Assembly (NCBI GenBank): GCA_964247055.1
Contig: OZ176051.1
Coordinates: forward strand, 8,060,001-8,124,000
Direction: 5' to 3'
Length of the DNA: 64,000 nucleotides
Origin: Paragordius varius
Taxonomy: Eukaryota; Animalia; Nematomorpha
Numbering within the stretch: the stretch's first letter is position 1; each line of letters begins with the position of its first letter. The notes beneath the pieces were generated by a model, which saw only the letters and a list, made by a program, of their open reading frames with translations, did not search any database and was not told the DNA's origin. Made by a program: the position numbers and the translations under genes. Below are positions 29,301 through 62,265 of the stretch, piece by piece.

Positions 29301-32300
29301 ATTGACTGATTATTAAGTTTTTATATTAATAAATTTGTCACAATAAAATAGAAATCAAAAAAATTATCTATCGGCATTGTAAAGTCCTATTTAATCTAAG
29401 AGCCTATGGGTAAAAAACTTAATCTATATAATTTAAATTGGTTAGAGTTTTTTAAAATTTTAATCTTCGATAATTATAACTTTTAACATGTACTTCAGGC
29501 ATATTTTCTGGAAGGGAGTGTATGTAAGAAGATTGAGTAAATTTTGGTGGCATATCAGCAGTATCTCTTACATTAATAATCAATGTTGCATTACTTGATA
29601 AAGTTTGATCAATCGGTAAAATCGATCCTCCATCCTATATTGTAAATAATTATTACAAGACTCATTTTTCAGCATATGGAATTTTACTTCTATAGAAAAA
29701 AATCGATTTTTAGGGATCCTCGCTGAAAATTATGAATTTGCCTTATACCGTTAAAAAAAGATAGTAATTAAAGAATAATTTTTAATTTTAATAATAATGT
29801 GATTTTCGATTAGAGAACATTAGTAATAATAGGCTTCAATTATAAAAATCTGTCAGTCGTATAACAAATTTTGGGTCATTGAATGCCATTAAGAAAAACA
29901 ATCTTAATTTAACTCATTTAAGTCTAGAAAAATTTGTTTCATAATATTAAAATGGTACAAAATCTAATAGATATCAGATATATTTGGATAATAGGAATAC
30001 CCGTGCAGTAATGAGTATTTGATGGATTCTTTGTGTTTCAAAGTCCAAACTTCGTTTCAGTTTTATTTGAAAGCTTTGAATAGTTGTGGCATCAAGATTT
30101 TGAATATTTTTTACGGAAAATAAGTGGGAATAATCTTGATTTCTTTGTTTATTACTCATTGGTTCAATGGTAAAAAACGTATTGTTTTTTGTTATGACCT
30201 CATTACCAACTGATATTTCTTGCAATTCAAATGTTAAAGCGCCAAAGTATGATGAATCCAGATCATAAGCTGAGAGTTTGGCAATGCTTGTATCTACTGC
30301 TAAATCCTATTTTTCAATAATTATGTTATAATACAATGGCTTACATACAGTTTTTAGGCTTTTTTACCTCTATACTAAAGGCAAAGAATTTAAATTGCAT
30401 TATTGGACCCGTAGCTCTGTGAGTGCCCGTGGTCGACAATGATGATTGAATTTCATGCATTTTATGAAAACACCTCTAAAAAATCTTCGACCTTTTACCA
30501 TGCAAAAATATAGTCTAAATATTAGTTTTATTTTATATTTTTGTAAAATAAACAGTTTTTAAAATCCGAATATAATTAGGAGTTAGTTTGCCCTACCTAA
30601 TCCGAACATGTATCATTAGCATATCATTATTGAAAGCTGGCAACTATGTAAATCAATAAATCCATAAAGTTTTGAAATTTAAAAAGCAAACCTCTTAAAT
30701 GAATATGTTTTTGGAAATAAATCAAGAGTATTTTGAAAATATCAAAAAATTGTATCGTGAGATCCGACAATAGATCGTTCTTATATGAAACGCTTAGTTT
30801 TTTAAGTTATTACTTATGTAAAAATAACTCGCTTACCTCATATAGAGAAAAAATTAAAGTTTTTTTTCCTAAAATATTTTACTTTATAATTTATAACAAA
30901 AACTTCCACATTAAATATTCTTAAGTAAATACGAAATATTTGTTTTTGACAAAAAGTTTAGTAGAGTGGACAAAAATTCACCGTTTTAACAATTAATACC
31001 TAAGTCCACTTTTAATACTTATGATTCCACACTACAAATTTAAGCATCGTCTTTTTGTCCGTAAATACTAAAACTCTACTGCATTTCATCCCTAAATTTG
31101 CAGCCTATGTAATATATAATTATGAGGTAGTTTTCAGAAAAATCTAACCATAATACAACATAATTTATCAACCCTAGCAATAAAATACTTTACTTCATCT
31201 ATGCTAATAGGGTTAAGAAAGGGAAGAAACTGGGGTTTTTCATCATTTACATCATCGACGTACAAGAACGCTTGAGTTCGAATTTTACAGGTTATATCTG
31301 ATGGATTATCCGAAACCGTGAGATAAAATGAATATGAGGATTTCACCTATTTAAATATAATAAACTAATAAATTATATTTTTATTGCATAACAAAATTAA
31401 CAATTCGATTCAATTTGGGGTATCTAAATATCCCAGACTATATTTAAATTGAAATTTCTAAAAAACTACTGAAAGAAACGGTCCCAATTTAAATTTATGC
31501 TTCTATCCTAATCAAAATTATATGAATAAACCGATATATATAAATTAAATTTATTGAGAAAAAAGTTCCATGTCAAACTACTTGGACACCATTTATTCAC
31601 AACATTTTTGCAAAATTTCGTGTTTATTTGATTTTAAAGCTAAAATGAAAGCTAATTTATCATTTAAATCACATCTAACATTGATAAACGTGGTTTATTT
31701 TGTATTATTTTTAATTTAGCTAATGCACACATGTCATGTTGACTAAATTTTTACCTTTTGAGGTTTTACCTAAAAATAAGTAATATCAAGTATTTTTGAA
31801 TGAAATTTTTTACATATTTCGGTTCATTAATGTTATATGAGTGCAAATTTTTGCCATGGTTTCAACTCTTTCCATATCTTTTTAATTATTTAATTTTAAA
31901 CAGGCGTGGGGTATCCAACTACCCCAATTTGAATCGAAGGACTGGAATGAGTGTGTTGTATCCAAGTGTTAATTTTCCACATATATTTGATATTCGAAAA
32001 TAATATTACATACAAAAGGCAAAGTTATTAATTTGATAATATTGTTTTAGAATACTTAATATTTTAACACTTTATTCAATTTGGGGTAACTAATGACCCC
32101 AGTCATATTTTAATAGATATTATTAAATTACTACTAAAAAACATGGTTCAAATTTAAGTTTCTTCTATCCTATTTAAATTTATACAAATAAGCCAAAATA
32201 TCTAAATAAAATTTAATTTTGAAAAAAACTCCATATCAATCAACTTAGACGCCATTTTTTTCACAACATTTTTGCAAAATATGGTGTTTTGTCTAACGCT

Positions 32301-37699: not shown

Positions 37700-40600
37700 A
37701 TGTTGAGTGTAATTTTAATCTTTTTGTTACGTCTACAATATTCGGTTTCAACTTCCCTTTATCAATGTCCATCAATTAGTGACAACATGTGTAATTTGGA
37801 TCGTTTGTATACTCCTAGCATTGGGTATGATTAGAAATGTTTTAAAAGTTTTTTAAGAAATATTAAAATATATTTATGTCCAAATTTATTATACCGATGA
37901 TGACCGTAATTGCTTTAATTTTGCAATTGCGTAAGAATAGGAGTCTTGCAATTGAATAAATTTTGACATTTTTAGTACCATTACAGATCACTAAATTACA
38001 TCATTTAGGTGATAATTATAAGTTTATATAATGATGAAGTTAAAATTTTTTAATAGGGATACTGATTTTCAGCCATTTAATTAAACCAAACTATATTATA
38101 AAATATCTTTAAATAGACATGAAATCTCTCAATTTAGGTAGCAGGTCATTTTTATAATAGAAGATTAAATGTTAGCTTTTTATAATATTATCACTTTTTT
38201 ACTTTTTGAGGTGATTAACGCAAATTTAAATTTAAATACTTATGAAAATAACGATAATATTGGATTAAAAAAACATTTTATGGCCTTTAAGGCGGTAAAT
38301 TATTTCGGATTTAGTGTTAGGATCATATCACAATGGCGGTATTTGAAATTTGATACAGTTTTTAAAATGCTGGTCATAAAAAAACATGAATAAGCTTTGT
38401 TATGCAACAAAACTAGTTTGGTAAGTTATGATAACCAAAGCTTTTATTAATAGATTGAACATTAGCATTCCATGCATGGAGTATGAATATGGATTTAATC
38501 TAATGTTACCCCAAGGAATCTATATATATTTACGAGAAAACATATACACTTATTTTTTACGACAAAACGAATTGTTACTTTGGCACCGAATATATTCATC
38601 TCACAAACCTACGGTATTTGTGATTTTTATACGCAACCTTCAGATAATATTTAAAACACATTTTATATAAAAATTAGATATATATAAGATATCAATGCGA
38701 CAAAATTTTAACCATGTTTGACTATAAATTATATCTTGTCAAAGTTTACGACCGAAACTTCGGATCCTTGCTGTCAGCCATGGGCAGGCAAGTTTTTAAC
38801 ATAGGTTTTTTACCAGTCTTAAAGCCGATAATATAATAATGAAAAATATGATTTTAAAAAGTTGCAAAGTTAGTTATCTATTTCTATAATCATATAATAT
38901 ATATGCAGCTAGAGATGTATAGCAATTTAAATAGTGTTGGACCTGGTACCAATAGTGTTAATAAAGCCTTTAGAACTCAGATTTACGATTTTAATTTTTT
39001 TATAATTTTTACACTATATTTATTTTAAAAATGGATTAGTATTTTATAGACGTTAATTTCAAACAATTGTTTGGATTAATAATTAAAAATGGACATCATT
39101 TATACGGAAACTTAAGCTATCGCAATATATTACTAATCATGCCATTTGCAACTTTGTATACCCCTTACCCCATTAATCAGCCAAAGCAAGTATAATATGT
39201 TGAATATGAAGTTAATAGCACAAATATTAATTAAGTTCATTGAGAATTCAAAAAAAACATATAATTATCAGATAAGTTTAAAATATCGTAACATAGAATA
39301 AAAACAATATTATATTTGGAGTTTATATCGTTTTTTTAGTTTTAAAATAAAATGGGCTTGATAATTAAATTTAAAAATCTGAAACCTGATTAAATATATG
39401 TAAATATAATCAAAATGAGCAGAAATATTATTTATGAATTATAATTTTTATGAGTAAGAAATAATAAACACGTATGTTAAAAGTTTTTAAGTTGTTATTT
39501 AGAGGTCACATCGGTTTAACATTCACTATTTGTCCTATTGTCATTGATTAGTTTTATATCCCAAAGCTCAATTTTGTAAATAAACTACTGTTTAGAAAGT
39601 TATTTTAGTTAAAATTTAATTAATAATTGTATGTATTGGATAAAAATCTTATAATTTTTAAAGTATCGTGACTTTTAGAGTCTAAAGTAGGACAGTACAC
39701 ATGATCGAACCAACAGCTGATATCTATATATAAATATTTCAAATTTTTGCCAAAGCATCCTGAAAGCTTTTTAAAGTTGATTATTTCCATTTTCTAAACA
39801 TAATATACATTTATTTGCCTGTTGCATTAGCGATTAAAAAATTTAAAGAAAAAAATGGCGGCGAAAAGTTTGAAATGATTTTTTTTAATTTTTCATTTTT
39901 TTTGTATTATGCGCCTAGGCTAAACATATTATTCGGCTTAATTACCTTAAATACTTTTATAATACATTAATGACTCTGGTATATAAAAAAGCCAAAAGGT
40001 CATGGAGTGCTGAATGCATTTATGGATGAATTCTGAAACAAAGAATCAGTGTTTATAGGCATGACATTTTCTATAAAACAGAATATTTGGTAAACATTTT
40101 TAATAATTTAAATAACCAAATAAACTGGCTCCAAATATAATTTTTAGATAAAAGCGTTTTCGTAATTCAGTTAATTCTGAACATAAAATTATTATTAATG
40201 ACCCGGATAAAATTTAAAATTTGTATTAAATAATATAACTACTATGTATTCTGTTTATTATTGTATAAACTTCAAAAAGCTTGTCCAAAATATATTAGAA
40301 TGCACCAGCGAGAGAAATACACATATGTTTTCCAAAAAAATGGCAATTAATAATTACATAACATTTAACGATATCTAAATTTATGGATAATATTAAAGCT
40401 TTAAATAATTATGCTATAGTTCATAAACACCGCAAGGTCATTATGCACCTAAAATGTTTAACTACTAATTTTTACATATATATGTAAATAGTTTAAAGTT
40501 TTGAGATATAATTGCTTTATAGTCAGCTGTTTTGCTTTTTTGCATTTATTTCTTTTATTTAGCGTTTGAAAGCCCGTTAATCCTTTTTAACGGTTCAAAA

Positions 40601-43220
40601 CATAAAAACTGGAGTTTTAAATTCTTTAAAATATTTACTGATGCAAGTAAGCTAGTAAAATTTTTATCATATATGGTCATATTCCCAAAACTTTAAAAAA
40701 TTATTAAATAAATTTAAAAATAGGGAACGAAAGTTTCAGTTATTTTGATCCATATACTTTAAAAATCTTAACATTTTATATTTAACTATGGATCAAATTT
40801 GAACATATTATAACGATAGGTTTGACAATGTATAATAACCACAATTCGTATATTATTAAAACAAACTGGCACATTTCCATCACCTTTTGGGGATTTATAT
40901 CATAGAGGGTTTGAAATTTTAAAAAAGTATTTAAGGTATGAAGCTGAATTCAAAAATATGCTTTTTTAGTCTTTCAGGATTATACAAAATGTAAAATTCT
41001 ATCATCCCAAACTTTGCCATTTTTTTCGATGTAAATCGCTAATGAAACAGGCAAATAATCGTATATTATGGTTAGAATATGTAAATAATTAACTTAAAAA
41101 GGCTCTCAGGCTATACTAAACCAGAAAAAAATGATATATTTTTATTTTATTAAAAGCTGTTCATTTCAATCGTGTTTTGGAGCTGTCCAAATTTTAGACT
41201 CTAGAAGTCACAAAATAAAAAATAAAGTATCTAATACATAAGAAATGTTTAAATTTAATTAAAATACCTTTCAAAACTGTAGTTTATTTACAAAATTGAG
41301 CTGTAGGATTACTCCAAAAGGTAGGACAAAAAAGTGAAAAGGTATTGAAGTGATAAGATAAATTAAATACCAAATATTTTATACATATCCTCCCTAGGTC
41401 TAACTAAGTGTCTGACTTTTGAAAACTCCACTCCCAAAAAATTTAGTTAATAGTCAACTGTTTATCATAAAGCAGTTAAAAAGGTTTTTCTGATTTTGTA
41501 TTTATTTTTTTATCTCTGTTTCTTATAGGTTAGGCTTGTTCAAACTTCAAATAATGGATTACTGTTGTATGAAATTCACACCAACTATATGATATATCGA
41601 GGTTCTATCCTAAATGCAACTTTCACTTTAACAAACATAATATTTAAATATTCTCAAGATGATCAAATCGATTTTGTAAATCCAAATTTTCAAATACAAT
41701 ATCCCTGTCATCCTGAATTATTGGGTATATTTAATCTCTTACTATTAAATTTACGTTTTCTACCAAATAATTTATTGATATTTTACTATATCATGTAAAT
41801 AGGGAGACATGGCTTAATTCCAAAGACGAAATTGGACAATCAAAGTGATTTTGTCTATTTTAATGTATTAGTACTGTTTTATATCTATGATGAATTATGT
41901 CAATTGATTACTGAAGATTATTTAGTTAACGTAATATACCTAAACAGAAATCAAAGTGACCCAATAAGCGCAATCACCTTAATCAAGTTTACTTTTGATA
42001 TTTATTTATCGAAATAAGAGCAAATAATATATAATTAAGCAAATGATTTAATTTTTGGTTTTTATAAACCAATGTCATACCACAAATTATACCATACATA
42101 AAATTAGATAGACTTATCTAAGGCTTACTTACATTTTATTTTTTGAAGGGGTATGCCACAGGCCTCATTAAAAAATATGGGCATTATTAAATATTTAATA
42201 GATTTCAAACATAAGATCAAGAAAATAAAAAAAAATGCTATTATATTACCAATTTTTATAGTTTTCTTATTGGTTAGAACTATATTGAAAATTTGTTCAA
42301 AAAATTTTATTATGATTTTGTGAGTATATTTTTGGATTTTTTTGTTTTCATTTTTTGGGCTCGGATTCGTAAATTAATGCAATAAATAGAGATACTTTAA
42401 CTTATGGGTGGATGCATACATCTTAATTTATCGAAACGGTCTAATCCAATGCGGCGCCCCATTATGTCACAAATGCCGTGTTTTTTCAATATGGAATTTG
42501 TTTGACACTATACCTACATTAAAAAATGAATTATTGGAAATGACCATCGAACGCAAGATAGCAAATAATTTTAGCGGATCACATCTAATAGTTGATTGAA
42601 TCGGCTAATTAATAGCCTCCAACTTATTTATGGCAACCCATATTATTACTGGTTGAAATACTTAAAAAGTGACATATTAAGCCTCAAAGGCAATGCTTTC
42701 CGTATGATATTTGGTATATTCATTTGTGTCCTCTGCATACATAGTATATATGCGATGAAATAAAGTTATGTGCTTGCTTAGTTAAAAGGTTTAAATTCGA
42801 TGCACAACTAAGTGTAAAAGAATTTTTAGGAAAGAAATAAGGTTGATTAGTTTAAATATTAATTGTATTGATTTTAACAGGCTGGTGGAGAATTTCGGTC
42901 GGCATTTAGCGTTTGATATCCAAATCCTTTTGCGGATAACGCTCAACATTATCCCAAAATTTGACAAACTATATATGTATTTTAAAATATTTTATACATG
43001 ATTTATTTTAAGGTTTTTGCCGATATATACGACGAATAGCCCATCTCTAAAAATAAAATTTGTGTCATATTTTGAACTGGTAAGGACCATGTTTGAATAC
43101 AATTTAAACTTCTTTGACAATGTGGAAGAGATCATAAAAAGCTTGATTACCTTTCATAATCAGTTTGCAGTATCTATGAACCAACGGGTAAGGCCATTTA
43201 TTGTTGTATTGCATATTTAA
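37700..43220 (+). CDS. Putative multi-exon orphan gene(s), possibly a membrane protein; structure unresolved
   Basis: GC-enriched open segments with AG/GT borders, e.g. 41529..41724 (VRLVQTSNNGLLLYEIH...YPCHPELL) followed by 41803 (RHGLIPKTKLDNQSDF). Others lie near 38750, 38910, 39090, 42400 (LWVDAYILIYRNGLIQCGAPLCHKC), 42600..42760 (hydrophobic MIFGIFICVLCIHSIYAM) and 42880..43220. No family recognised. Confidence 0.35.
39550..39993 (-). mobile_element. MITE family B copy
   Basis: Reverse-complement homology to 12424..12896 (GTTTTATATCCCAAAGCTC end; AAAATGGCGGCGAAAAGTTT core). Confidence 0.65.
40888..41320 (+). mobile_element. MITE family B copy
   Basis: Collinear with 12424..12896 (GGGGATTTATATCATAGAG start; AAATTGAGCTGTAGGAT end). 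Confidence 0.65.
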
Positions 43221-43947: not shown

Positions 43948-44255
43948 AGTAGTTTTAGATCCAGGAGCGATTTGAAATTTGATTATCTTACTAGGCCGAT
44001 ATGCTTATTTTTTTTAAAAAAAAAATGTTAAATCGTAAAAATCCTCATCTCAAACTTTTTCACCGCCATTTTCTTATTTTTTTTCTCGGATAGAAAATTT
44101 TAATTAACTTTAGTAAGGTTTCAGGCAACATTTTACCAACTAAAACTTGATATTTAAAATTAGCCGTTTTTCGATAGTGTTTCGGAGCTGTGCCAATTTT
44201 AGACTCTGGGAGTTATAAAACTGTAATAAATATAAACTTTTTTATCCAATACAGG
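43948..44255 (+). mobile_element. 5' part of a MITE family B copy, cut by the hAT insertion
   Basis: Matches 12424..12800 up to CCAATACAGG; the continuation is on the minus strand at 54125..54060. Confidence 0.75.
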
Positions 44256-45406
44256 CAGGGGCGTACCGAGGGGGGTGCAAGGGGGTGCATCATGCCCCGG
44301 GCGCCGTTATTTAGGGGCGCCTAAATGATTTTTTAAAATTAATTAATTATGCAAAAATAATAAGAACTTTCAAATGAAATTTTTTAGCAATTTAGGTAAT
44401 AATCCTTATAATATATACTTAAGGTGACCAGATTTTTTAAAGGAAAAAGCGGGACAAATCTGAGGGGGGGGTCATTGGGGGGGTGCAACTAAAAATTTTT
44501 ATACAAAAAATTTATCGTGATATTTATTTATTTTTAACACAAATATATTATAAATATAAAAAAAAATGTACCTTATAGGTTGTTTGTAACTTATTCAATA
44601 AATTTACATGTGCACGAACAAAGGGTGAAGTGATTGTAATATACTAAAAAAAATAATAAAGACGAAATCATCACAAAGTGCGCTGGGTGATGCAAGAAGC
44701 GGCACAAAAAATATTTTTAACAATTTAGTGAATAATCTTAATCAAAACATTATTGGCAGATACACGTTATTCAAATAGCTACTGATTTGTTACCCCTGGA
44801 TGTGGAAAATATAGATGTTAAAATGCTTGGATATTGTACAACTGTTAATTTGCTCTTTTGCTAGCGATTGAAATATTTATAAAAATGTGATCTCCTAGAA
44901 TCCTATTAGTCAAAAAATGTTAGAAAATAATTTTATACCATTACCTAATCGCAATATTATAAAGCATCCAGAAAAACAAGGCTCAGTGAATAGCCAGAAT
45001 ATAAAAATGTTTTATACAAACAGAAACGATTATTTGGAAGAAAAGACGGTGCATAATGACACTTTTTTATGAAGTCTCATTATAAAATAAATATATTGAA
45101 TGAAAACTTATATTATGGACAAAAGAAAAAAATACGTAGGATAGAAATGGTTAAAATAATCATTTTTAAACAAATTATGTTCCATACAATAATATTTTAA
45201 TTGTAGAATTCGCATTATCCTTACCTGAACCACTGCTATTGAACGTCTTTTTTCACAGTAAATTAAGTAAGGACACGGAATCAAATTTAAATGTTAAATA
45301 AAAGCCATTTTATGTGTTCAAATATAATTTAACAAATTATGAAGACTTATACAATATTTTAAGTAGTTTTGTTTATTTTTAACACAAAAACTTTTAAGAA
45401 AATATT

Positions 45407-47232
45407 TTATTTTTTGGTATATTTTTTGTTTGAGTGAATGCGTTTTAGCAGATTGTCATCATTTTTTAAAATATTGTAGAAGTCTTCACAAGAATTTGTC
45501 AAATTATATTTGATAGATAAAACGGCCTTTAAAGTTTCAACATTTAAATTGATTTTTCCGATGTCCACACCAGATTTACTGTGGAAAAAACGCGCTCAGT
45601 AGCAGCGTTGGTTCCAGGTAAAGATAGTGCGAATTCTACAATTTTTAAAATATTATTGTATGTAATATAGTTGGCTTCAAAAATATTTCGAACCAGTTCT
45701 TTTCTAGTGTTTATTTTGTCATAATTTAAGTTTTTCATTATTAATATATCTTTTAACTAATGATACTTCAGAAAAAAGATCATTTTCTGAAAGATTACTT
45801 TTTGAAAATTTTTGGGAGCAGATATAATCAAATGATTTTTGAACATCGCATCAATTAAATTCTGATTTTAATGTTATCCAATGAAAATAATCAATTTCAT
45901 TGATTTGCGTCGTCCAGTCTTCCAAATAATCTTTACAGTTTGTATAAAACATTTTTATATGGTACAGGATATCTTGGCGATTTATTAAGCCTTGTTTTTC
46001 TAAATAATTTATTATATTGCGGATGGTTAATGGTCACAAATTATTATCTAACCGTTCTTGACATTGGAATTTTAGGTTACTAACTTCATTGGCTACTTCG
46101 ATTGTCGAAATTTTGTCACCTTCTATAAATTTAATAATATTTTGAAATAGAGAAGCTTGATTATGTAAGAATTCTAACCATGATTTTGAAGAATCACTTT
46201 CAAAAAACTTTTTTAAAGTTGTAGGACATTTGTACTGTGACAAAAAAATGATTTTAAATGATCATACATTTTTAAATTCTTTCGATAGCTGGCATAAAAG
46301 CTAACCAACGAGTTTTACAATATCCAAGCATTTTTTGATATTGAACTTCTGCATTTTCACAGAATTCTTTAAGCGTTTCAACACGTACCGTTTATATATA
46401 AAAATAGGAATATATTTTAACGACTACATTTTCCACATCTACGTTGTGTATTATATGCGCTGCACACCCGACGCCAATAATGTTTTGATTAAGATTATCT
46501 GTTAATTTATTAAAAATATTTTTTGTTCCCTCCTTGCTTTTCCCCCAAAGTTCGTATTGGTGTTGTCAGCGCAATATGCGATAATTTTGTCTTTTAAATT
46601 ATTTTTTTCTAGAATATGCATTATTGAAGTAAATATTATTTCGGAATTTTTACCGAGTAGAGAAATTAAATCTAAAATTTTAATTTTTACTCCGGTTTTT
46701 AAATCAAAATATCTTATTAAAGCGGGAAATAATATTGTTTCATGTGATTTGATGCATCAGAGTATAGGGATAAGAAATTACTTTTCAGCAAATCTTTTTG
46801 TATTTCAGATAATGCATGTGGCGAAAGGACATTGCATACAATGGCTTCAGCCTTTGTACGGGCACATGAAAATTTTTTATTGAATAACGTGCGAATAACT
46901 TGTGAGGTAAAATCCATAGATCTAAAGAAATGATTGTGATAAACGGCGTGAAAAGATAAAACGCCTTCGGCTAATGCCAAATTCTTTTCTTCCTCTCCAA
47001 AAGCGGTTTTTCGATAAAAATCGCTCAATTTGTAAGATGATGCCGCCATATCCAAACATTTTTTTATTTTCTGTGTTTACATATGCTTTGTAATATCATG
47101 CTTGCCGCCATGTTCTATGGTGAATTCCCCTTCGGATAAAAAACATTTAACAAATGATTCATTCTTGGTTTTGATAAAAGGAAATTCTTTCATTAATTTA
47201 TCGTTGAATTTACAACCTCTTTTTGTGCTCAT
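45407..47232 (-). pseudogene. Disrupted hAT transposase (left arm)
   Basis: BED-like start (KCFLS..FTIEHGGKHDITKH), then SLYSDASNH, YCADNTNTNFGG, GCAAHIIHN, TRWLAF and the dimerisation motif LSLPGTNAATERVFS; several stops and frameshifts. Confidence 0.88.
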
Positions 47233-47279
47233 ATTTATAAACTACTATTAGTATAATAAATATTATATTACCTTATCTG

Positions 47280-47640
47280 GAATAAACGTGTAAGGTACCG
47301 ATTTGTGGTATCAATTTGTCGTTTAAGCTACCGATTTGTGGTATTAATTTGGCTTTAAAATAATGTTGGCAAGTAATAAAACTAAAATATTAGTATATGA
47401 AATAAACGTGTAAGGTACCGATTTGTGGTATCAATTTGTTTTTTAAGCTACCGATTTGTGGTATTAATTTGGCTTTTTGATATGTTAGCAAGTAATAAAA
47501 CTAAAATATTAGCATAGTAAATATTATATTACCTTAATTTTCTGAAATAAACGTATAAGCTAACCCATTTGTGGTATTAATTTGTCTTTTAATCTAGAGA
47601 TTGTGGTATTAACTTGGCTTTTTGATAATGATGACAGTAG
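47280..47640. repeat. About 120-bp tandem repeat x3 with internal 31-bp subrepeats, upstream of the transposase
   Basis: Units begin GAAATAAACGTG/GGAATAAACGTG; each holds two TACCGATTTGTGGTAT(C/T)AATTTG motifs; mirrored at about 54600..54960. Confidence 0.85.
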
Positions 47641-48584
47641 TAGTAGGAATCAAAGTGTATAATTTTATGATATAAATTCGAAAAAAATAAATATTTTTGA
47701 TTTAAAAATAAAAAATTTTAATTTAAAATTGAATAGATTTTAAAGATATTTAATGAAAACTTAAAACGGATAAAAAAAATTTATTCGTATTAAAAAAAAT
47801 TTTTTTTAGATAATCGTGAAAAAGCGGGACATTTTAAAAACGTAGCGGGACGCGGGACAAAGTGTTAAAAAGCGGGACGTCTGCTTATATATAATCTATT
47901 ATTCACCGAATTCGTACCATTGAATTAATTTAGTATCATATAAATATATATATTTATTAGATTTAAAATTTATATGACTAGGCTGTCCTATCTATGGTGT
48001 TTAGGTTACAACGTTTGTATTTTTTTACTAAATTGTTTTATTGGTTTTTTAAAAAAAGGGGGGAGGGGCGCCATAAAATTTTTATGCCCCGGGCGCCGCA
48101 AATGCTCGGTACGCCACTGATGGTGTGATACAAAATTATTATTCGAGATCTTATATTTAATTTGGATATTATCATTCATTTTAAGCCAATAACCCCTTTT
48201 AAAAACCGAAAGAATCTTTGATTAAGTTTTCATTGTAATCAATATTTTAATATTATCGCTTTCCATCATTTGTTTTTTATGATCGGCATTTTCCATGCTT
48301 TTATTCGCTTGTTGATTCATTAATCTATTTGTATATCATCAATTATTGTAGGTTTTACTCACAAGATGTGGTAAAGGGTCAAATACCCTTAAACTGAAAC
48401 CGAGGTTAGGAGATAAAACCGCCCCCAATACCTAAATTCATTTAAATTGCGATGGCCCGCGGCCTGCGGATTTATACTATATATCATAGGATATGCGTTG
48501 TACAAAATTTGACATTTACCTTTAAAAACATATTATTTTATCTAAAAACTATCATTCACAATCCGGCTATAGATTTACCCTAAT

Positions 48585-48880
48585 CCAGAGGTGTCCTACA
48601 CAAATGGTGCGCGAACCGCATTTTTAACTAAAAAACCCGAAGGGGGCATTTGAAATATATATGGGCATTCCTAAATCATTCAGTAGATTTCAAACATAAG
48701 AAATGCAAACACATTATAGCAATAATTTATAGTTCTTGCCAATTGGATAAACTGAATTAGAAAAATTGTTTATGTAATATTAATTATATAAGATTTTGTG
48801 CATATTTATATATTATAGATTTCCAAATTTCTCGAGGGCTATACATAAAGTCTCGAAGGGGCGCGTGTTAGACACCCCTG
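48585..48880. mobile_element. hAT-type MITE inside the inverted segment
   Basis: CAGAGGTGTCCTAC / GTTAGACACCCCTG; flanks CCCTAATC / CTCTAATG; internal similarity to about 42150..42370. Confidence 0.65.
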
Positions 48881-49680
48881 CTCTAATGGATAACAAAACA
48901 TTCACAAATTATTAATATCCTTTGCTCATAAAAAATTAATAATATACTTCTTATAACATGGGATATTCCGCAAAACAATTATTTGGGAGTTTAAATTTAA
49001 AAAAGACTCTTTTTTTAAAAACTTGTTTCGGAAATTTTTTTTTTTAAAATAAATTAACACTGTTTTTTGAATCCACAATTTATGTGATTCATGTATCTTA
49101 ATAAAAAATTATTTATCTATAGTTAATTAAATTTTTTTTGTAGAACATCACATTAAGGAATGCTTGTCTCGAGCTTTTAAAAATATTGATATTAATATGA
49201 CCTATTTATTTAATGGAAAAAAATAACTTTTTTACTGTTTTTAACTATAGTTAATGATTGGATAGATCTTTAAAACTCCTGTATCGTATTACTTTTCCAT
49301 CGGTTTTGCTTATACATATTTAAATAAAAACAGGCACCTTCGTCCTACTTGCTGTGATAGGAGATTTATAATGTTATCCCAATTTAAGTGAGCTTAAGGT
49401 TTTGTAATTTTTATAAACCATATATTAGCTATAACAATTTGATAATTTGACTGATTTGGTTGATGTGAAAATAACCGACTTAGAGGTACAAAATCCGGCA
49501 AACTAACCGTTTAGGTTTTAAAGAGCTTTGTACATCCGATATTTTTAAAAGCAATCGATTATCAACTCTATGGAAACCACTTGTCCGGTAACAATCAATC
49601 ATATTTTCCATTTTATATTGGTGTCAAACTGCTAATACCAAATGTATTTTATAGTATTTGACATATATAATAAATATTTT

Positions 49681-50363
49681 TTAATTAATAAAATTTATCA
49701 TATTAATAATTTCTTGAAATGTGTCGGAATAATCTTGATAGGGAAGCAAAAGACTTTCACGGTTATTTTTCACATCCACTGAATATTTGTTATAATTATC
49801 ACATATTTTTTGACTATTTATAATAATTTTGGTTTGAGATTTTGGAAGGTCTTTAAGCCTCAATAAATAATTTTCCTGAAAAAATTAGATGTAACACACC
49901 TGAAACGGTTTATCCATATTATTATCATAGCCCAAAAGATTATTTAATGATAATGAAGGTTTGTGAATTAAAGTGTAATTTTTGCATAGATCAGGATGGC
50001 GACGAAGCTGGATTGTAGGAAAGCAGGAATATTTTTTTGTATAATCCGCTAAAAAATCGCTGGTTGATTCATTAAAGTAAAATACGCTATCGTTATTTTT
50101 AAGCTGTAAATGCAATGGAATGGATTCTAAATTATCAACATCACATAGTTCATTATTTGGATCTATCAATTTCATTAAATTATTGGGATAATATTTAGTC
50201 CATAAAATTGGATGACATTTTTTCCGTTTTTTAGATGTATTATGATTTAGGTTCTTCTTATCTATAATTGTTATAAAATTTTACTATAATATGCAGGATT
50301 TTTTGTTTTCTTTTGTGAATAAGGTTTCAGTAAAAACTTATTGGAATCTGAGCTGCCTAGCAT
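49681..50363 (-). CDS. Hypothetical protein, about 210 aa, 3 exons, divergent from MRRF
   Basis: ATG 50363 MLGSSDSNKF...; GT-AG introns 50284..50262 (23 nt) and 49899..49876 (24 nt) join the three open segments, including ORFs 49885..50175 and 49681..49863, into one frame. No family recognised; the 3' end could extend. Confidence 0.6.
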
Positions 50364-50409
50364 AATATAATATTAACCATATGAATATTTTTTCACTAAA
50401 CGGCAAAGC

Positions 50410-51236
50410 ATGTTTCAACTTCTAAGATCTATACCTTTTTTGAGTCTTAACACCTATAAATATATCCGGCATTTCTCCTCAAAAAAGCGTAATTTAACAA
50501 TTTACTTTTAAGCTAAAAAAGTTAATATAGATGAAAATACTTTTTCCTCAATAATTAACGTAGACAAACTAAATAATGAATTTCAGGTAATTTTGGAAGA
50601 TGCATTAAAACGGTTGAATAATTACTTTTTACTTTCAAACGGGCCAAGTTGAAATGATTTTATTATTAGATTTAATTTGTGACCTGACAATTGAAAAAAA
50701 CAATAAAGTTTTAAAATTAAAAGATGTGTCCCAGATAGTTTTGAAAGGGCAAAACTTATTAGCCGTTAATTTGATGAGCAATCCTGACGTTTATATACAC
50801 ACTTTAATATAAAGCTAATAACAAAAGTAGAAAAATCCTTGAATACGAGTGGATTGAATTTGAGTATTCAAAAGGAAGGACCCGTTATATACGTAACTAT
50901 GCCCAGGTTGGATACATTATAATTAGAGAATTACACAAGAATATAAATTAAATTTAGTCAAGTCCGGAAAAACTATACTACAAAAATATAAAAATTGCAT
51001 AAAAGAGACCCAAAATTCTTATATAAACCAGACCAATTCATTAAACAACAAATTCTCCAAAGATGACATATACAAATCCAAAATGAAAGTAAAAACCAAC
51101 AAATATTTATTTCTATAACATAATATAAAATTATTTATTTTCTTTCTTGCAGATCCAGGAAATGGCCCATGAATATTTCGATAAAATTGATGGTGTATTT
51201 GAAAAAAAGAGTCAAAAATTTTTAAAGCACGTTTAA
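50410..51236 (+). CDS. MRRF: Mitochondrial ribosome recycling factor, 222 aa, 6 exons
   Basis: Exons 50410-50488, 50513-50647, 50670-50788, 50815-50906, 50929-51088 and 51153-51236 give one open frame. It starts with a basic/hydrophobic presequence MFQLLRSIPFLSLNTYKYIRHFSSKK. Later segments are KDVSQIVLKGQNLLAVNL, SLNTSGLNLSIQKEGPVIYVTMPRITQEYKLNLVK and IQEMAHEYFDKIDGVFEKKSQKFL, which match RRF motifs (SG.NL.P..EG..I.VPIP..T.E.R..LVK; IQ...D..I..ID..L..K.KEL). Missed by the ORF track. Confidence 0.85.
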
Positions 51237-51302
51237 AATAAATTAATAATCATGTACATCTCCTTAAAATATTTTTTGCCGAGAATATTAAAATCTCAAC
51301 AC

Positions 51303-52083
51303 TTATTTTTTGATTCTTCTTGGATACATGAATCTGTGTTTCATCAAGTTATATGGTTGAATTTTTAATTGTATTTTATTATCTTTAAACAATTTTTTGA
51401 CAAACGGGTATGTCAAGATCTCAATTAAATGCGATTCTGTTTTTCTGAAACATTTACCTTTTTTCACTTAAGTCCCTGACCTATGGCCACAAACTGGGGG
51501 GTGGACATATATAAAATTATATGCCTCATAATTAATAAAAGTATAAACTTTAACTAAACATTATTAATTGTTGGAGAACAATATTTTTAGTTCCTTTTCC
51601 TCATTTGAAATTGGATTTTATTGTATACATATGGGTAAAGTTCTTAAATTAATTATTTTTATGTTTATGTAATGGTTAATTCTTAAGTTTTTCAATTAAA
51701 TATTTGGTATAAATTATAATATCAGAAGAATATTTTTACCACTTTGTTGTTTAAATAAGATTTTAGATTTTATTACACCTAATGCAACAAGATTTCTTTT
51801 TTTTTCGGACGCAAGGCGTTTTGTATGATACCAATCAAAAATACATTCTTGACCTAAAATTAGACAAAATATAATATATTTATGAAATAGTTGGGCAATT
51901 AATTATTTTTGATAGAATTATTTTCGATCGTTGATTTTCAATTTCAAAATTCATGGTAGTTTTATTGCGCTGACATGTTATTTGATACAGATATGTGTTG
52001 GCCCACTCCACTCGGTATAGATTATTATTGATATGGATTTCCCTGTAAATTTTGACTTTCTGATCACTCATAATTATTAACAC
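51303..52083 (-). CDS. Possible hypothetical gene convergent with MRRF
   Basis: Open segments 52083..51880 (SDQKVKIYREIH...), about 51850..51740 (QECIFDWYHTKRLASEK) and about 51445..51303 (TESHLIEILTYPFVKKLF...RRIKK*) with plausible splice sites; the joins are not resolved. Confidence 0.3.
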
Positions 52084-52843
52084 CTATTTATTTAAAACAG
52101 TTTATATTACTTTATGATTGTATTTTAGTCGTAAACTCCAATGTTTAATTAAAAGTATTTTATTCTTTTCAAAATTTAATTTTGATTAAACATAAATAAC
52201 CGGTCCTGATTAAGAATGCAATCATTCAATGGAATTTGGAAGTATATGTATGCGTTGTAATTAAATATAAAATGGGATTCAGTCACATAAAAAGTGTCGA
52301 TAGACAATGAATAAACATGATGGCATTTCTACAAATTTTTAATATTACGAGATAAACAAGCGTTTAAAATTTTTAAAGAATGGACTCCAAACAGCTTAAA
52401 CGTAAACTTAAATAAGCAACTTGTTGGAATAATTACTTTAAAATTAGTTTTTACCGTAATTATATTAAAATATTTTAGAGTAGTTCTTGTATATAATAAC
52501 AATGGAAATATATAAATAATTTACTTTTTCATTTTCCAGAGTCATAATCTGTCTTTTTTCTCCACTTAAAGTAAAAAGATTCAGTTGACATTTTGATGTA
52601 TGGTTATATCTAATTATGATCTAAAATATATTGGATAAAATTTTTCAGTCAAAAGCAACGCTTATTCCTAAATACACATTGTTCAAATCATCACAGCATT
52701 TTAATTGAAACAATGTTGAGTTGGTAAAAAGTGTTGGTTTCGATTGAAAATGCTATATTATATTTAATTTTAAATTTAATACATTTATGCCTTTAGTGTT
52801 ATTAAAACATAACGAAATAGCTGAGACTATATTAACCGCGTTT

Positions 52844-52990
52844 GATATACCTTCAATCTATGTGTTAATATAAATTTATTCATAAAAATTTAATTTTAGT
52901 ATGATTCGCCTTTTCGCCCAATAAGTGATATACCTTCAATCTATGTGTTAATATAATTTTAATATGATTCGCCTTTTCGCCCAATAAGTG
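52844..52990. repeat. Local tandem duplication, about 83 bp plus a 63-bp copy with an internal deletion
   Basis: GATATACCTTCAATCTATGTGTTAATATAA ... TATGATTCGCCTTTTCGCCCAATAAGTG occurs twice in a row. Confidence 0.85.
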
Positions 52991-53065
52991 TCCGATTATT
53001 ATTTTTAGTAAATATATCAACCGTCTTCAAAAAATGTAAATATCTCAGATTTTGTTAATTTAAAT

Positions 53066-53716
53066 CAGGGCTAACCGCTTCAAAAAAAGTGGAACCGGAA
53101 CCGGGTCGGTTCTTGATCAAGTGGGACCGGAATCGCGTTGGTTCCTTAAAAATTTGCGGATCCGGAACCGGTTCCATTTTCGGTTCCTAACTTTTGATTA
53201 AATGATTTACAAATTTTTATTATAATAATAAAACCAAGATATTAACAATTATAAATCAAACAATTTATTTTAAATTGCCGAATGAATAGTAAAGAAATAT
53301 AGTGTAGCATTATAAATTAAACAAATTATAAATATATAATAGGAAAATGTATAAGTACAAAGGTAAGTTAAATTAAGTATGGCATTTAAAAAAAAATCTT
53401 TATTTAGATTTAAAAATTATTGCACCAAGCAAAATAGAAAATTAAGGGTGAAAAAGCTCCTTTCAATGGATTATGTATACGAACATATGTATTATAAATA
53501 AACTCGTCTTATGACTACAGGCGCTTAATTTTGGGTTTAAAGTTTTATGTAATATGTAGTGGTACAATCAAATTTAAATTATAAAATAATATTTTTATAA
53601 TAAAAATCATATGGAAGCCAGTAATTAAGGGGTTGAACCAGAACCGCGTTGGTTCCATTCCAATGGAACCGGTTCTTGTTAAAATCCCAGGAACCGGGTT
53701 CCGGTTCCAAGCCCTG
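53066..53716. mobile_element. hAT-type MITE with GGAACCGGTTCC subterminal arrays
   Basis: TIR CAGGGCT / AGCCCTG; flanks ATTTAAAT / GTTTAAAT (7/8). Confidence 0.75.
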
Positions 53717-54125
53717 GTTTAAATTAATTGATCGCTAAATATACTACTTCCTCATTATACTAGGGTAGCTAAAAAAACTATTTTAAAAAATGATATATTC
53801 ATTATTATCATCTATCTATTGGCAAAATTTATAAAAGATCTAATTTGGAGATAATTTGTTTGTTTTAATCTAAGAGAATGACAATACTAGTAGAAAAATG
53901 TAGAGTTACGGGATTTAATAAAGCATAAATCAGATACATAATACCTATTTACAATAAGTTTATATTATAGCCATTTTTAAATTGATATACGGTTTGCGTA
54001 ATAAAAGTGTGTGTGGTGTAGGGCTTTAATCAAATGACTTTGTTTTAATACTTTATAACCTTTTTTACTATTTTGAAAGTTATTTTGGTTAAAATTCTAA
54101 TTGTCGAACATTGTTCTCCTGTATT

Positions 54126-57100
54126 CAGTGGCGTACCGAGCATTTGCGGCGCCCGGGGCATAAAAATTTTATGGCGCCCCTCCCCCCTTTAAAAAACCAA
54201 TAAAACAATTTAGTAAAAAAATACAAACGTTGTAACCTAAACACCATAGATAGGACAGCCTAGTCATATAAATTTTAAATCTAATAAATATATATATTTA
54301 TATGATACTAAATTAATTCAATGGTACGAATTCGGTGAATAATAGATTATATATAAGCAGACGTCCCGCTTTTTAACACTTTGTCCCGCGTCCCGCTACG
54401 TTTTTAAAATGTCCCGCTTTTTCACGATTATCTAAAAAAAATTTTTTTTAATACGAATAAATTTTTTTTATCCGTTTTAAGTTTTCATTAAATATCTTTA
54501 AAATCTATTCAATTTTAAATTAAAATTTTTTATTTTTAAATCAAAAATATTTATTTTTTTCGAATTTATATCATAAAATTATACACTTTGATTCCTACTA
54601 CTACTGTCATCATTATCAAAAAGCCAAGTTAATACCACAATCTCTAGATTAAAAGACAAATTAATACCACAAATGGGTAGCTTATACGTTTATTTCAGAA
54701 AATTAAGGTAATATAATATTTACTATGCTAATATTTTAGTTTTATTACTTGCTAACATATCAAAAAGCCAAATTAATACCACAAATCGGTAGCTTAAAAA
54801 ACAAATTGATACCACAAATCGGTACCCTACACGTTTATTTCATATACTAATATTTTAGTTTTATTACTTGCCAACATTATTTTAAAGCCAAATTAATACC
54901 ACAAATCGGTAGCTTAAACGACAAATTGATACCACAAATCGGTACCTTACACGTTTATTCCAGAATAAGGTAATATAATATTTATTATACTAATAGTAGT
55001 TTATAAATATGAGCACAAAAAGAGGTTGTAAATTCAACGATAAATTAATGAAAGAATTTCCTTTTATCAAAACCAAGAATGAATCATTTGTTAAATGTTT
55101 TTTATCCGAAGGGGAATTCACCATAGAACATGGCGGCAAGCATGATATTACAAAGCATATGTAAACACAGAAAATAAAAAAATGTTTGGATATGGCGGCA
55201 TCATCTTACAAATTGAGCGATTTTTATCGAAAAACCGCTTTTGGAGAGGAAGAAAAGAATTTGGCATTAGCCGAAGGCGTTTTATCTTTTCACGCCGTTT
55301 ATCACAATCATTTCTTTAGATCTATGGATTTTACCTCACAAGTTATTCGCACGTTATTCAATAAAAAATTTTCATGTGCCCGTACAAAGGCTGAAGCCAT
55401 TGTATGCAATGTCCTTTCGCCACATGCATTATCTGAAATACAAAAAGATTTGCTGAAAAGTAATTTCTTATCCCTATACTCTGATGCATCAAATCACATG
55501 AAACAATATTATTTCCCGCTTTAATAAGATATTTTGATTTAAAAACCGGAGTAAAAATTAAAATTTTAGATTTAATTTCTCTACTCGGTAAAAATTCCGA
55601 AATAATATTTACTTCAATAATGCATATTCTAGAAAAAAATAATTTAAAAGACAAAATTATCGCATATTGCGCTGACAACACCAATACGAACTTTGGGGGA
55701 AAAGCAAGGAGGGAACAAAAAATATTTTTAATAAATTAACAGATAATCTTAATCAAAACATTATTGGCGTCGGGTGTGCAGCGCATATAATACACAACGT
55801 AGATGTGGAAAATGTAGTCGTTAAAATATATTCCTATTTTTATATATAAACGGTACGTGTTGAAACGCTTAAAGAATTCTGTGAAAATGCAGAAGTTCAA
55901 TATCAAAAAATGCTTGGATATTGTAAAACTCGTTGGTTAGCTTTTATGCCAGCTATCGAAAGAATTTAAAAATGTATGATCATTTAAAATCATTTTTTTG
56001 TCACAGTACAAATGTCCTACAACTTTAAAAAAGTTTTTTGAAAGTGATTCTTCAAAATCATGGTTAGAATTCTTACATAATCAAGCTTCTCTATTTCAAA
56101 ATATTATTAAATTTATAGAAGGTGACAAAATTTCGACAATCGAAGTAGCCAATGAAGTTAGTAACCTAAAATTCCAATGTCAAGAACGGTTAGATAATAA
56201 TTTGTGACCATTAACCATCCGCAATATAATAAATTATTTAGAAAAACAAGGCTTAATAAATCGCCAAGATATCCTGTACCATATAAAAATGTTTTATACA
56301 AACTGTAAAGATTATTTGGAAGACTGGACGACGCAAATCAATGAAATTGATTATTTTCATTGGATAACATTAAAATCAGAATTTAATTGATGCGATGTTC
56401 AAAAATCATTTGATTATATCTGCTCCCAAAAATTTTCAAAAAGTAATCTTTCAGAAAATGATCTTTTTTCTGAAGTATCATTAGTTAAAAGATATATTAA
56501 TAATGAAAAACTTAAATTATGACAAAATAAACACTAGAAAAGAACTGGTTCGAAATATTTTTGAAGCCAACTATATTACATACAATAATATTTTAAAAAT
56601 TGTAGAATTCGCACTATCTTTACCTGGAACCAACGCTGCTACTGAGCGCGTTTTTTCCACAGTAAATCTGGTGTGGACATCGGAAAAATCAATTTAAATG
56701 TTGAAACTTTAAAGGCCGTTTTATCTATCAAATATAATTTGACAAATTCTTGTGAAGACTTCTACAATATTTTAAAAAATGATGACAATCTGCTAAAACG
56801 CATTCACTCAAACAAAAAATATACCAAAAAATAAAATATTTTCTTAAAAGTTTTTGTGTTAAAAATAAACAAAACTACTTAAAATATTGTATAAGTCTTC
56901 ATAATTTGTTAAATTATATTTGAACACATAAAATGGCTTTTATTTAACATTTAAATTTGATTCCGTGTCCTTACTTAATTTACTGTGAAAAAAGACGTTC
57001 AATAGCAGTGGTTCAGGTAAGGATAATGCGAATTCTACAATTAAAATATTATTGTATGGAACATAATTTGTTTAAAAATGATTATTTTAACCATTTCTAT

Positions 57101-57986
57101 CCTACGTATTTTTTTCTTTTGTCCATAATATAAGTTTTCATTCAATATATTTATTTTATAATGAGACTTCATAAAAAAGTGTCATTATGCACCGTCTTTT
57201 CTTCCAAATAATCGTTTCTGTTTGTATAAAACATTTTTATATTCTGGCTATTCACTGAGCCTTGTTTTTCTGGATGCTTTATAATATTGCGATTAGGTAA
57301 TGGTATAAAATTATTTTCTAACATTTTTTGACTAATAGGATTCTAGGAGATCACATTTTTATAAATATTTCAATCGCTAGCAAAAGAGCAAATTAACAGT
57401 TGTACAATATCCAAGCATTTTAACATCTATATTTTCCACATCCAGGGGTAACAAATCAGTAGCTATTTGAATAACGTGTATCTGCCAATAATGTTTTGAT
57501 TAAGATTATTCACTAAATTGTTAAAAATATTTTTTGTGCCGCTTCTTGCATCACCCAGCGCACTTTGTGATGATTTCGTCTTTATTATTTTTTTTAGTAT
57601 ATTACAATCACTTCACCCTTTGTTCGTGCACATGTAAATTTATTGAATAAGTTACAAACAACCTATAAGGTACATTTTTTTTTATATTTATAATATATTT
57701 GTGTTAAAAATAAATAAATATCACGATAAATTTTTTGTATAAAAATTTTTAGTTGCACCCCCCCAATGACCCCCCCCCTCAGATTTGTCCCGCTTTTTCC
57801 TTTAAAAAATCTGGTCACCTTAAGTATATATTATAAGGATTATTACCTAAATTGCTAAAAAATTTCATTTGAAAGTTCTTATTATTTTTGCATAATTAAT
57901 TAATTTTAAAAAATCATTTAGGCGCCCCTAAATAACGGCGCCCGGGGCATGATGCACCCCCTTGCACCCCCCTCGGTACGCCCCTG
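54126..57986 (+). mobile_element. Composite hAT element, right arm (3861 bp), inverted copy of 44256..48119
   Basis: CAGTGGCGTACCGAG ... CTCGGTACGCCCCTG; nested element 54354..57822; identical ORF translations in both arms; only a few homopolymer indels and substitutions seen. Confidence 0.92.
55009..56834 (+). pseudogene. Disrupted hAT transposase (right arm)
   Basis: Same motifs and the same disabling lesions as the left arm (e.g. TAA after DITKHM). Confidence 0.88.
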
Positions 57987-58661
57987 CACACCATAAATTT
58001 AAGGAAACGTTTATAATAAAAACTTAAAACAAGAAATACAACAAATGAAATGGATATTATGAGAACATTTATGGATAAAAAAAATTTTTCAGGAAAAAAG
58101 AGCTAAAAAGTACCGAGAATACCCCCAAAAATTCGTATTCAATTAGGAAAAATTTCGAATTGCATTGCAGCAACCATCAAAACCTTTTGTGGAAAAAATA
58201 CATGGCTCTATGCATCAAAAACTATTTTTGAAAATTTTGGATTTCACTTTTTATTAATAATAGATAATTTTTATTATTTTACGAATATATGAAATATTTG
58301 AAAAATATTTATATTTTAATGATTTTAGTTAATTATGAGAGCATCAAAATACCCACAAAATATAGGCTTAGAATAGCTTTAATTTAAAACTTGGACCTTA
58401 TTTTAAAATCGGAAGAGCGCATGATAACCAACTGAGATGTCATATGATTACAAATTCTAGAAAACCAAAGACAATTTAAGGTATGATATAAACCAGGATA
58501 TAAAGTAAATAAAATTCATTGTTATTTATTGGTTAAAAAATTAAATTTAATAATATTGTTATATATGGTGTTTTGTTTTTACAATATAGATTTTTCGTAT
58601 AACAATAATAATTGTATATAATCTAAATATTATTAATTTTTTGTTTATGATTAATATCTAT

Positions 58662-59525: not shown

Positions 59526-61538
59526 TCAATAATAAACGCGAGGATGTTTAAGCATAGTGTTAGCTGTTAGATTGTCATCGCTCTCCCCCAATGCAATTTC
59601 GGTCGGGAGTGGTTTAATCAAAAAGGAAAGAATGTCAGAAAGGGAAAGCATACCGACACATTTCCAATGTTCATCAACCACAACGAGCCTGTGAACACCG
59701 GCTTTAACAATTCTAATATTTTAATTATATGAGTCTTATATGCTAAGTATAAGTATATTGATATATAAATATATATAATTTTATTAATGGGAGTAAGTAC
59801 TTTATGTAATCTACATTAATCATATAAAATCGGTTACATTTGACTAAAAGTAATTACAAACAAATAGTTATATCCATAGTTAAAGTCATGTATTCTCAAA
59901 ACATTATTAGGAATATATTATGGGGTTTAGAACTATCCGAAAATACCATTATTTCAATCATAAAAATTTTATAGTTTAGTTCAGTGCCACGCTTTTTTCG
60001 GCACGCAAAAGTCCTTTCAAAGTGTTAAAAAATTGGATTTACGATTATTTAAAAGATATATCTTCCAAAATTGGACTTAAAATAACCCAAAATTGGTTAA
60101 ACTTAAACTCACCTATCTATGACAGCCCCCAATTTTTCTCCTTTCTGGCAACTATGGACCTCTTCTATGATATGGGATCTGTATCCAAGAGCCTCCCGGA
60201 CTGACACATCCAATTGACGATATGAACGTTCCGCGGCCAAATTTATCACATCAAACTAAGGTAGAAAGTAATGATAAGAAATTGTTTAAAAAATCTAACA
60301 AAATCGCAAATAATATTCCATTTACAGTTCAAATTCACCATTAAATTAGTCAAATTCACCCTTAAACTATTTAAATTCACCCTTAATCCAAATTCACCCT
60401 AAACGAAATTAATTTTTAAGATTAAAAATTACCTATATTTTTTATATTTAACAAAAAATAAAATTACGTGTAAATTTAACATAATACTGAAATACAATAA
60501 ACTATGCCATAAGACAATATATTTTAATTAAATGATGAGTTATATTAACCCGAAAACACATAATTTATTTTTAGGGTTAATTTGAATTGTTCAAGGGCGA
60601 ATTTAGATTGTAAATGGTATAAATAAATAATTTTATAAAACAAACTTTTGCGTAAACATCGATAACGCGATTGTCCGAATGTTTAAGTACTGGAAGCGCA
60701 GATATACGTTTTTCTGCAAACAAATCTAATGCATGACCGATCGGGGTGTCTTCATAAACAGTTTGAACATTTTCATATGTACCTACCAACAAATATATTG
60801 AAAAATGAAAAAATGTCCTTTATAATTTTTAATTAATATTATTTTTATTTATATCCGTAAAACAGATAAATAATGTAAATTTTTAAATTTTTTGTTAACT
60901 TCCTAAAAAAATACAACATAGTCAATCAAGCATCAAAAGAACAAATGGTTAAAAAACTTTTTTTATTTTAAAAAATATTAAATGTATCATATCAATGTCA
61001 TTAATAAATAGTGTTATACCAATATCAAGTTCCTCCAAAGTTTTATCCATAAACTTTGGCCGGGGCGTAAGATCATCCATGTACAAGCAAAGGAATCGTA
61101 AGATACGCTTATGCGTTAGAATGTATAATGCATTACCCGTCATTGGATCAACTACGGGTAATCGATGTACCCTGTTTTTAACCAAAAGACGGGCCGCCCT
61201 CAGTAGATTAACGCGCGGATCAACCCATAAAAATGGTCTGCAATGTTCACGAAGGAATTCGTCTCGCCACGTTTGAATTTTATGTTCTTCCAAATTATCT
61301 ACCGTTATAACCGGATTCAGATTCAAGGGTGGTGGTACAGTTTTAGCTGGATTATCTGATGGCTCATTCGTATAGGTTGACGTTTCTGTTTTTAAAGCAG
61401 AATGATGGTTATGGATATTATTTTTGGAAGAAATGGTGTTGTGGTCATTTGATTTTGTATTTGCAAAATTCGTGATATTGGTATCCCCTGAGATTTGAGC
61501 GTCATGCGTGTTTTGATTATTATTTTCTGTTTGTTTTT
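59526..61538 (-). CDS. PRKAG: AMP-activated protein kinase gamma subunit, 3' exons (5' part not located)
   Basis: Exon 61538..61020 LEEHKIQTWR...RVHRLPVVDPMTGNALYILTHKRILRFL; exon about 60785..60646 GTYENV...RISALPV...VIDVYAK; exon 60255 to about 60113 FDVINLAAERSYRQLDVSV; last exon VHRLVVVDE...GMLSLSDIL to the TGA at 59526. Confidence 0.92.
60316..60619 (-). mobile_element. MITE family H copy in PRKAG intron
   Basis: TTCCATTTACAG / TGTAAATGGTA ends; homologous to 18155..18395; extra AAATTCACCC repeats. Confidence 0.7.
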
Positions 61539-62265
61539 CTGTCCGACATTTAGATAAAATATAAATTTATGATTGTTTGTAAAAGAAATGTTTTTGCACA
61601 ATAACAGGAATATATTTAATTCTAAGGCAAATAATCTTCTTGGCAACGGATTCATATCAATAAAAATAGATTAAATTTCAATATAATTTTATCTAAAAAC
61701 GCCTATAGTATATAGTGGAGTAATTAAAACCTGTAAGTTAATGTCTAAAGACTTAAACGTCATTTTAATCAAAACTTATAAATTTCGCCTAATATCATTA
61801 TTTTATATATATGTATGTGAAACAATATATCAAAACTATTTCATAAGTTATAAACACAATGTAAGTTTTGAGCAAAGTAGGCATAATAAGTTAAAATATC
61901 ATTAGTATCGATTTTTTGTAATTTTATTTTCTTATTATATAACAATGAGCACTATAAGTGTTATGAAAAACAATTTCTAAAAATTCTTTTGTCTAAATGG
62001 TATATCGAATCAAATATATATAAATTATTTTTGAAAAATAGATTTTGCTTCATAAATACTTTCTCGCAATGAATATATAATGGGTTAATTAAAATATTCA
62101 ATTATTCAATATGATATTTTAATATCCCAAAAACTGCATATCTAAAGCTCAAATTTTGACACTAATTATCATAAATATTTTAATGGTAAGGGAGGAGAAA
62201 ACGAGACAATTTCTATATTGTCTATTCTAAATATAGAATTTTATACCGTATTGTCGTTCTCGTCG

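Follow-up and report, generated by a model that had tools for sequence, protein, structure and literature searches.

Exchanged target-site duplications point to a small transposon-made inversion in the hairworm Paragordius varius

A 64,000-nucleotide stretch of contig OZ176051.1 from the hairworm Paragordius varius (assembly GCA_964247055.1), here called the window, contains two copies of the same element in opposite orientation, pointing outward from a gene-bearing block of about 6 kb. Was this block turned around by the elements that bound it and, if so, by which route, and in the animal or in the assembly? The whole unit measures 13.7 kb and every junction can be read (Table 1). The locus appears to be a small, complete and young inversion made by a transposable element (TE), of a type already known from fruit flies. 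What is new here is the phylum, together with the small extent of the inversion and the nested structure of its arms; a search of the literature for a TE-made inversion of such kind in Nematomorpha found no described case.

Table 1. Positions of the elements, duplications, repeats and genes discussed in the text (window coordinates, unless a metagenome contig is named)
Feature	Position	Strand	Details
Target-site copy A, outer	44248..44255	+	AATACAGG; 8/8 reverse complement of 54118-54125
Left arm, composite	44256..48119	-	3864 bp; 15-bp TIRs
MITE shell, outer part	44256..44419		holds passenger TSD copy TATATACT at 44412-44419
Nested passenger hAT	44420..47887	-	3468 bp; terminus TAAGGTGACCAGA at one end, 5 bp of that TIR missing at the other
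Internal foldback copy of passenger transposase	44569..45362	+	inverted, heavily deleted, 72-86% identity
Broken passenger transposase	45410..47241	-	split over several frames into some ten stop-free pieces; hAT dimerisation domain toward the end
120-bp tandem array	47274..47523		arm differences 47275 and 47413 inside, 47562 just past
MITE shell, inner part	47888..48119		begins with passenger TSD copy TATATAAT
Target-site copy B, inner	48120..48127	+	ATGGTGTG; 8/8 reverse complement of 57987-57994
Inverted unique block	48128..54117		5990 bp, between the arms
Host-repeat second half	54066..54117	-	first half about 43950-44255 on +
Target-site copy A, inner	54118..54125	+	CCTGTATT; partner 44248-44255
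Right arm	54126..57986	+	3861 bp; passenger inside at 54354-57822
Target-site copy B, outer	57987..57994	+	CACACCAT; partner 48120-48127
Arm difference 1	44463/57778		G8 vs G9 run
Arm difference 2	47275/54965		1-bp indel
Arm difference 3	47413/54827		A/G, sole substitution
Arm difference 4	47562/54679		1-bp indel
Arm difference 5	48051-48054/54191		A7 vs A3 run
Left neighbour gene	41529-43220	+	multi-exon; ends at good donor site 43187
Gene 1	49681..50363	-	three exons, 211 aa, open frame; introns 23 and 24 nt; local model
MRRF	50410..51236	+	six exons, 222 aa, intact; introns 24, 22, 26, 22, 64 nt
Doubtful third gene	51303..52882	-	exon-like pieces, without homologue, low model score
AMPK-gamma gene	59526-61566	-	about 75 aa of apparently low complexity precede the matched CBS region
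MITE-like elements	L008 438-685; L009 1346-1593; L010 1198-1445; L011 (385 bp)		metagenome contigs

Junctions and identity of the arms

Global alignment of the left arm with the reverse-complemented right arm revealed one substitution and four short indels, five differences in all, and the central 2813 bp of the arms are 100% complementary. Near-identical inverted arms of about 3.86 kb had been predicted for this locus, a description that is borne out by so few differences. The same prediction placed at the arm ends four 8-mers, each paired with its reverse complement on the other arm; arms and 8-mers were all found where predicted, and both swapped pairs match at 8/8 positions. The joint chance of these matches is about 8e-11 under the local composition, and chance was hence rejected as their source. 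Compared as direct repeats, the flanks of each single arm match at 2/8 positions only. No further copies of the arm termini were found within the 64-kb window.

Target-site duplications (TSDs) that are exchanged between inverted copies have been described as the hallmark of an inversion made by a TE (PMC2775673, PMC3355041, PMC7642927). As far as sequence can tell, the locus belongs with the TE-generated inversions with exchanged TSDs of the Galileo/BuT5/FB type. The enclosure of host genes by two inverted element copies would also suit a composite (macro-)transposon of 13.7 kb, and a template-switch inverted duplication could be envisaged as well, the 8-mer matches being incidental in either case; both are very improbable and largely refuted. 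The two outermost flanks match at only 3/8 positions as direct repeats, and the macro-transposon was rejected for want of a direct TSD at its outer ends. Furthermore, at each of the four junctions the homology ends precisely 8 bp beyond the element, which counts against both the composite and template switching, and a host repeat at the left site (site A, described below) puts the block at this locus beforehand.

A MITE shell with a nested passenger

Each arm is a nest, in which a hAT-type MITE shell of 388 bp encloses a dead foldback hAT of 3.47 kb. The outer ends carry the features of hAT elements, namely short and intact terminal inverted repeats (TIRs) of 15 bp, CAG(G/T)GGCGTACCGAG, which match at 14/15 positions, together with the 8-bp TSD. 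The passenger likewise has hAT features: transposase domains in a broken gene, subterminal GTCCCG repeats, and a TIR and an 8-bp TSD of its own, the TSD matching at 7/8 positions (chance 0.003). Its transposase matches PF05699 with E=3.4e-4 and 20.8 bits, just below the cut-off of 21.4, and relatives give a weak zf-BED match. Within the passenger (44569-47241, mirrored in the right arm), the inverted, deleted transposase copy sits behind the end of the gene.

A related transposase contig (L003) shares with the passenger 70% nucleotide identity over 1.45 kb and the GTCCCG block, and nothing of the shell; since this contig ends near the passenger terminus, it offers what seems to be partial evidence for the nest. 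Passenger-free elements with the end type of the shell occur in metagenome contigs and measure 248-385 bp. Three of them (L008-L010) display the same T/G asymmetry at TIR position 4 as the shell here, and the flanks of the 248-bp stand-alone elements match at 6/8 positions as a TSD.

The locus was originally described as bearing a pair of hAT elements. This holds for the hAT-type outer ends and their 8-bp TSD, while the arm as a whole is not one element but a MITE shell with a dead passenger. Because the arm is a MITE carrying such a passenger, the enclosed transposase, which is the passenger's, is probably not the maker of the outer ends; a cognate transposase for these ends was looked for and none was found. 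We infer that the mobile unit is a MITE with old cargo, moved in trans by a transposase from elsewhere.

The single substitution in 3857 bp between the arms amounts to a divergence of 2.6e-4 (95% interval 7e-6 to 1.4e-3), or about 1e3-2e5 generations at a borrowed mutation rate of 3e-9. At the heterozygosity of Gordionus montsenyensis (0.548%), which as that of a different species is a proxy at best, 21 substitutions would be expected against the one seen. The near-identity of the arms therefore suggests that the arrangement may be young and possibly unfixed, although gene conversion or polishing can also homogenise arms.

Orientation of the block and the route to it

Evidence independent of the TSD swap is found at site A. 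When 44255 is joined to 54117, read downward in reverse complement, an older dispersed host repeat is restored. Alignments to the repeat copies at 39586-39695, 5248-5320 and 41164-41276 run through the re-joined site with E values of 2e-12 to 9e-11, a fourth copy, at about 12.4-12.85 kb, matches both sides of it in order, and a control join that preserves the assembled orientation is spanned by none of them. The re-joined empty sites were compared within the 64-kb window, and the support at site A comes from paralogous repeat copies; at site B (48120/57987), no comparable repeat marker of the original orientation was found in this comparison. Since the split repeat heals only in the reversed join, the block would have pointed the other way before the insertion, and the presence of the host repeat at site A implies that it was already at this locus by then. 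The predicted inversion of the inner segment relative to the pre-insertion chromosome is hence supported on two counts, by the swapped TSDs and by the host repeat that is divided at site A.

The split-repeat evidence fits a real inversion and an assembly swap alike. In the latter case the animal would carry two inverted copies with direct TSDs, between which the unique block was mis-oriented, and an assembler that swapped the repeat exits would yield the identical sequence. A point in its favour is that all arm differences but the substitution are small indels, which lie in base runs or in the tandem array. We nevertheless consider it improbable: the window contains no N, the contig continues for at least 2.3 Mb before and at least 6.1 Mb after it, which implies long reads, and long reads should normally span repeats of 3.9 kb. 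The two arms also bear distinct variants, no GATC or GANTC site lies at any arm edge, and no identified gene is broken. A real inversion in the animal, whether by a hop and recombination or by hybrid insertion, seems highly probable to us. Were reads to refute it, the locus would be a useful marker of repeat-driven mis-orientation in this assembly.

How such an inversion may have arisen can be framed in two ways, both offered in the original prediction as recombination or a single alternative transposition, and both reproduce the sequence exactly in string models. In the route that we prefer, to which we would give about an even chance, a non-autonomous composite with hAT-type MITE ends and a dead passenger would first have been present as a single insertion, flanked by an ordinary 8-bp duplication. 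With transposase provided by some other locus of the genome, a second copy would then have landed 6 kb off, inverted with respect to the first, which most likely stayed in place as the donor of a local hop. A crossover between the inverted 3.86-kb copies would finally have flipped the block and swapped the duplications. With the real flanks, two insertions followed by a crossover anywhere in the arms reproduce the observed sequence letter for letter. We infer the local origin of the second copy, its mobilisation in trans, a course of two steps instead of one and the presence of the arrangement in the animal; our weights for the routes are judgements, not computed values.

The exchanged TSDs, the opposite orientation of the arms and the split host repeat at site A support this recent two-step history, and so does a precedent of like anatomy. 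In(2L)Cy of D. melanogaster, which has 99% identical FB foldback copies at its breakpoints, was attributed to a hop, after which new and donor copies recombined (PMC7642927). It shares with the hairworm locus near-identical copies at both ends, exchanged TSDs and no gene loss, but it spans about 10 Mb, involves FB elements and 9-bp TSDs and was confirmed by long reads, whereas the hairworm inversion spans 6 kb and is read from an assembly. The D. buzzatii inversions 2j, 2q7 and 2z3 (Galileo) and 2s of D. mojavensis (BuT5) are also alike in their oppositely oriented copies, exchanged TSDs, single target copy per empty site and nested secondary elements (PMC2775673, PMC3355041). Their elements belong to the P superfamily, however, in contrast to the hAT-type ends here; furthermore, the copies of 2z3 are demonstrably chimeric with one-sided nested inserts, whereas the hairworm arms share one nested passenger (PMC2775673, PMC3355041).

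The original prediction also held that the MRRF block could be polymorphic or flip recurrently. Balanced inversions that toggle between highly identical inverted repeats are known in humans, where they flip at rates between 3.4e-6 and 2.7e-4 per generation (10.1101/2021.12.20.472354; PMC3961182). Borrowing these rates over the estimated 1e3-2e5 generations makes one flip feasible. Their recurrence was seen in haplotypes, and 72% have arms of at least 10 kb, compared with the 3.86-kb arms of a single assembly here (10.1101/2021.12.20.472354; PMC3961182); the prevalence of such long arms counts against the two-step route. So does the need to fit two events into the period in which 3857 bp came to differ by one substitution, as well as the lack of detectable chimerism between the arms, for which only five differences serve as a guide. 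Chimeric copies are the published diagnostic of ectopic recombination and identical copies that of hybrid insertion (PMC2775673).

Hybrid element insertion would achieve the outcome in one step, with ends on different sister chromatids pairing after replication and the hybrid inserting 6 kb away, so that the inversion, the exchange of TSDs and a pair of identical copies in opposite orientation all arise from a single event. We hold this to be a possible route, less probable than the two steps above. In the string models it yields the observed sequence exactly, whichever site is taken as the donor, and the arms, with their one substitution, come close to the identical, non-chimeric copies that it predicts (PMC2775673). 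A single event without gain or loss beyond the TSDs and with intact outer TIRs is in keeping with it, a necessary but not a sufficient condition. Identical copies are, however, also expected from a local hop with recombination, no transposase to match the outer ends was found, and the authors of a 2020 Drosophila paper knew of no wild-population inversion formed by hybrid element insertion (PMC7642927). The laboratory precedent, P-element hybrid insertion (Gray et al. 1996, as related in PMC2775673 and PMC7642927), predicts exactly such a product with identical copies; it comes from crosses, whereas the hairworm case is inseparable from a hop with recombination unless population data are at hand. 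That the locus represents a natural inversion in a wild animal by one hybrid insertion of hAT-type MITE ends, perhaps still segregating and perhaps one among several products of alternative transposition in this genome, is a tentative and rather unlikely reading.

Ends of the hAT type do make inversions in Ac/Ds (PMC3470690), and inversion breakpoints in cod are enriched in hAT MITEs. The reversed-ends inversions of Ac/Ds resemble this locus in their hAT ends, an 8-bp TSD split across the breakpoints and local targets, but they need two pre-existing reversed ends, lose the intervening segment and split one new TSD (PMC3470690). Transposition of this type was rejected here, given two whole copies, two swapped TSD pairs and nothing lost.

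The 13.7-kb unit is small enough to be typed by one long read or by four-primer PCR, and typing a population could separate hybrid insertion from the preferred ectopic recombination, between which the Drosophila cases were either settled for recombination or left open. A proven one-step origin would be of greater consequence, as the Drosophila paper of 2020 was aware of no such inversion in wild populations (PMC7642927).

Genes in and around the block

The block had been predicted to carry housekeeping genes. One of them, MRRF, is identified and intact, and no other block gene was identified. Two successive MRRF exons match Pfam RRF positions 56-84 and 86-137, and one 22-nt intron is bracketed by contiguous RRF matches. 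MRRF and gene 1 lie head to head, their start codons 46 bp apart. The spliced gene models are local only, and searches were run exon by exon; for gene 1, the third gene and the left neighbour, the Pfam, PDB, Atlas and homologue searches and a fold gave nothing usable, the predicted fold of gene 1 having a pLDDT of 39 and an exon of the left neighbour matching a cubilin CUB domain non-significantly (E=1.2). The MRRF exon search of representatives returned one match, a compositional artefact.

All four junctions lie 1.06-1.55 kb from the nearest modelled exon. No effect of the arrangement on genes is evident, and no identified gene is broken. The left neighbour may at one time have run on into the third gene across site A; a local parse gives the ancestral join 26.5 and the control join a nearly equal 26.2.

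To the right of the unit, an exon of the AMPK-gamma gene finds its best match in Gordionus sp. m RMFG-2023, at 74% identity; no 5' exons of the gene were found. The Gordionus model XP_065323537.1 (L006 2575-9992) comes from an unplaced contig of 24 kb, and one of its exons is interrupted by an in-frame stop; it is probably a degraded or low-quality copy. Synteny with Gordionus, compared on that contig only, gave no MRRF or gene 1 match.

Several minor features were also observed in the window. A short tandem duplication with a unit of about 60 bp (52860-52992) overlaps the place where the doubtful third gene may begin. An older hAT-type MITE of 651 bp, with CAGGGCT ends and an 8-bp duplication of 7/8, was recognised by eye at 53066-53716. 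Elsewhere, inspection by eye revealed an FHA-domain kanadaptin-like gene (1198-3820, - strand), an intronless GPCR-like ORF of 425 aa (6923-8197, + strand) and a long cadherin-repeat gene (14735-33327, - strand).
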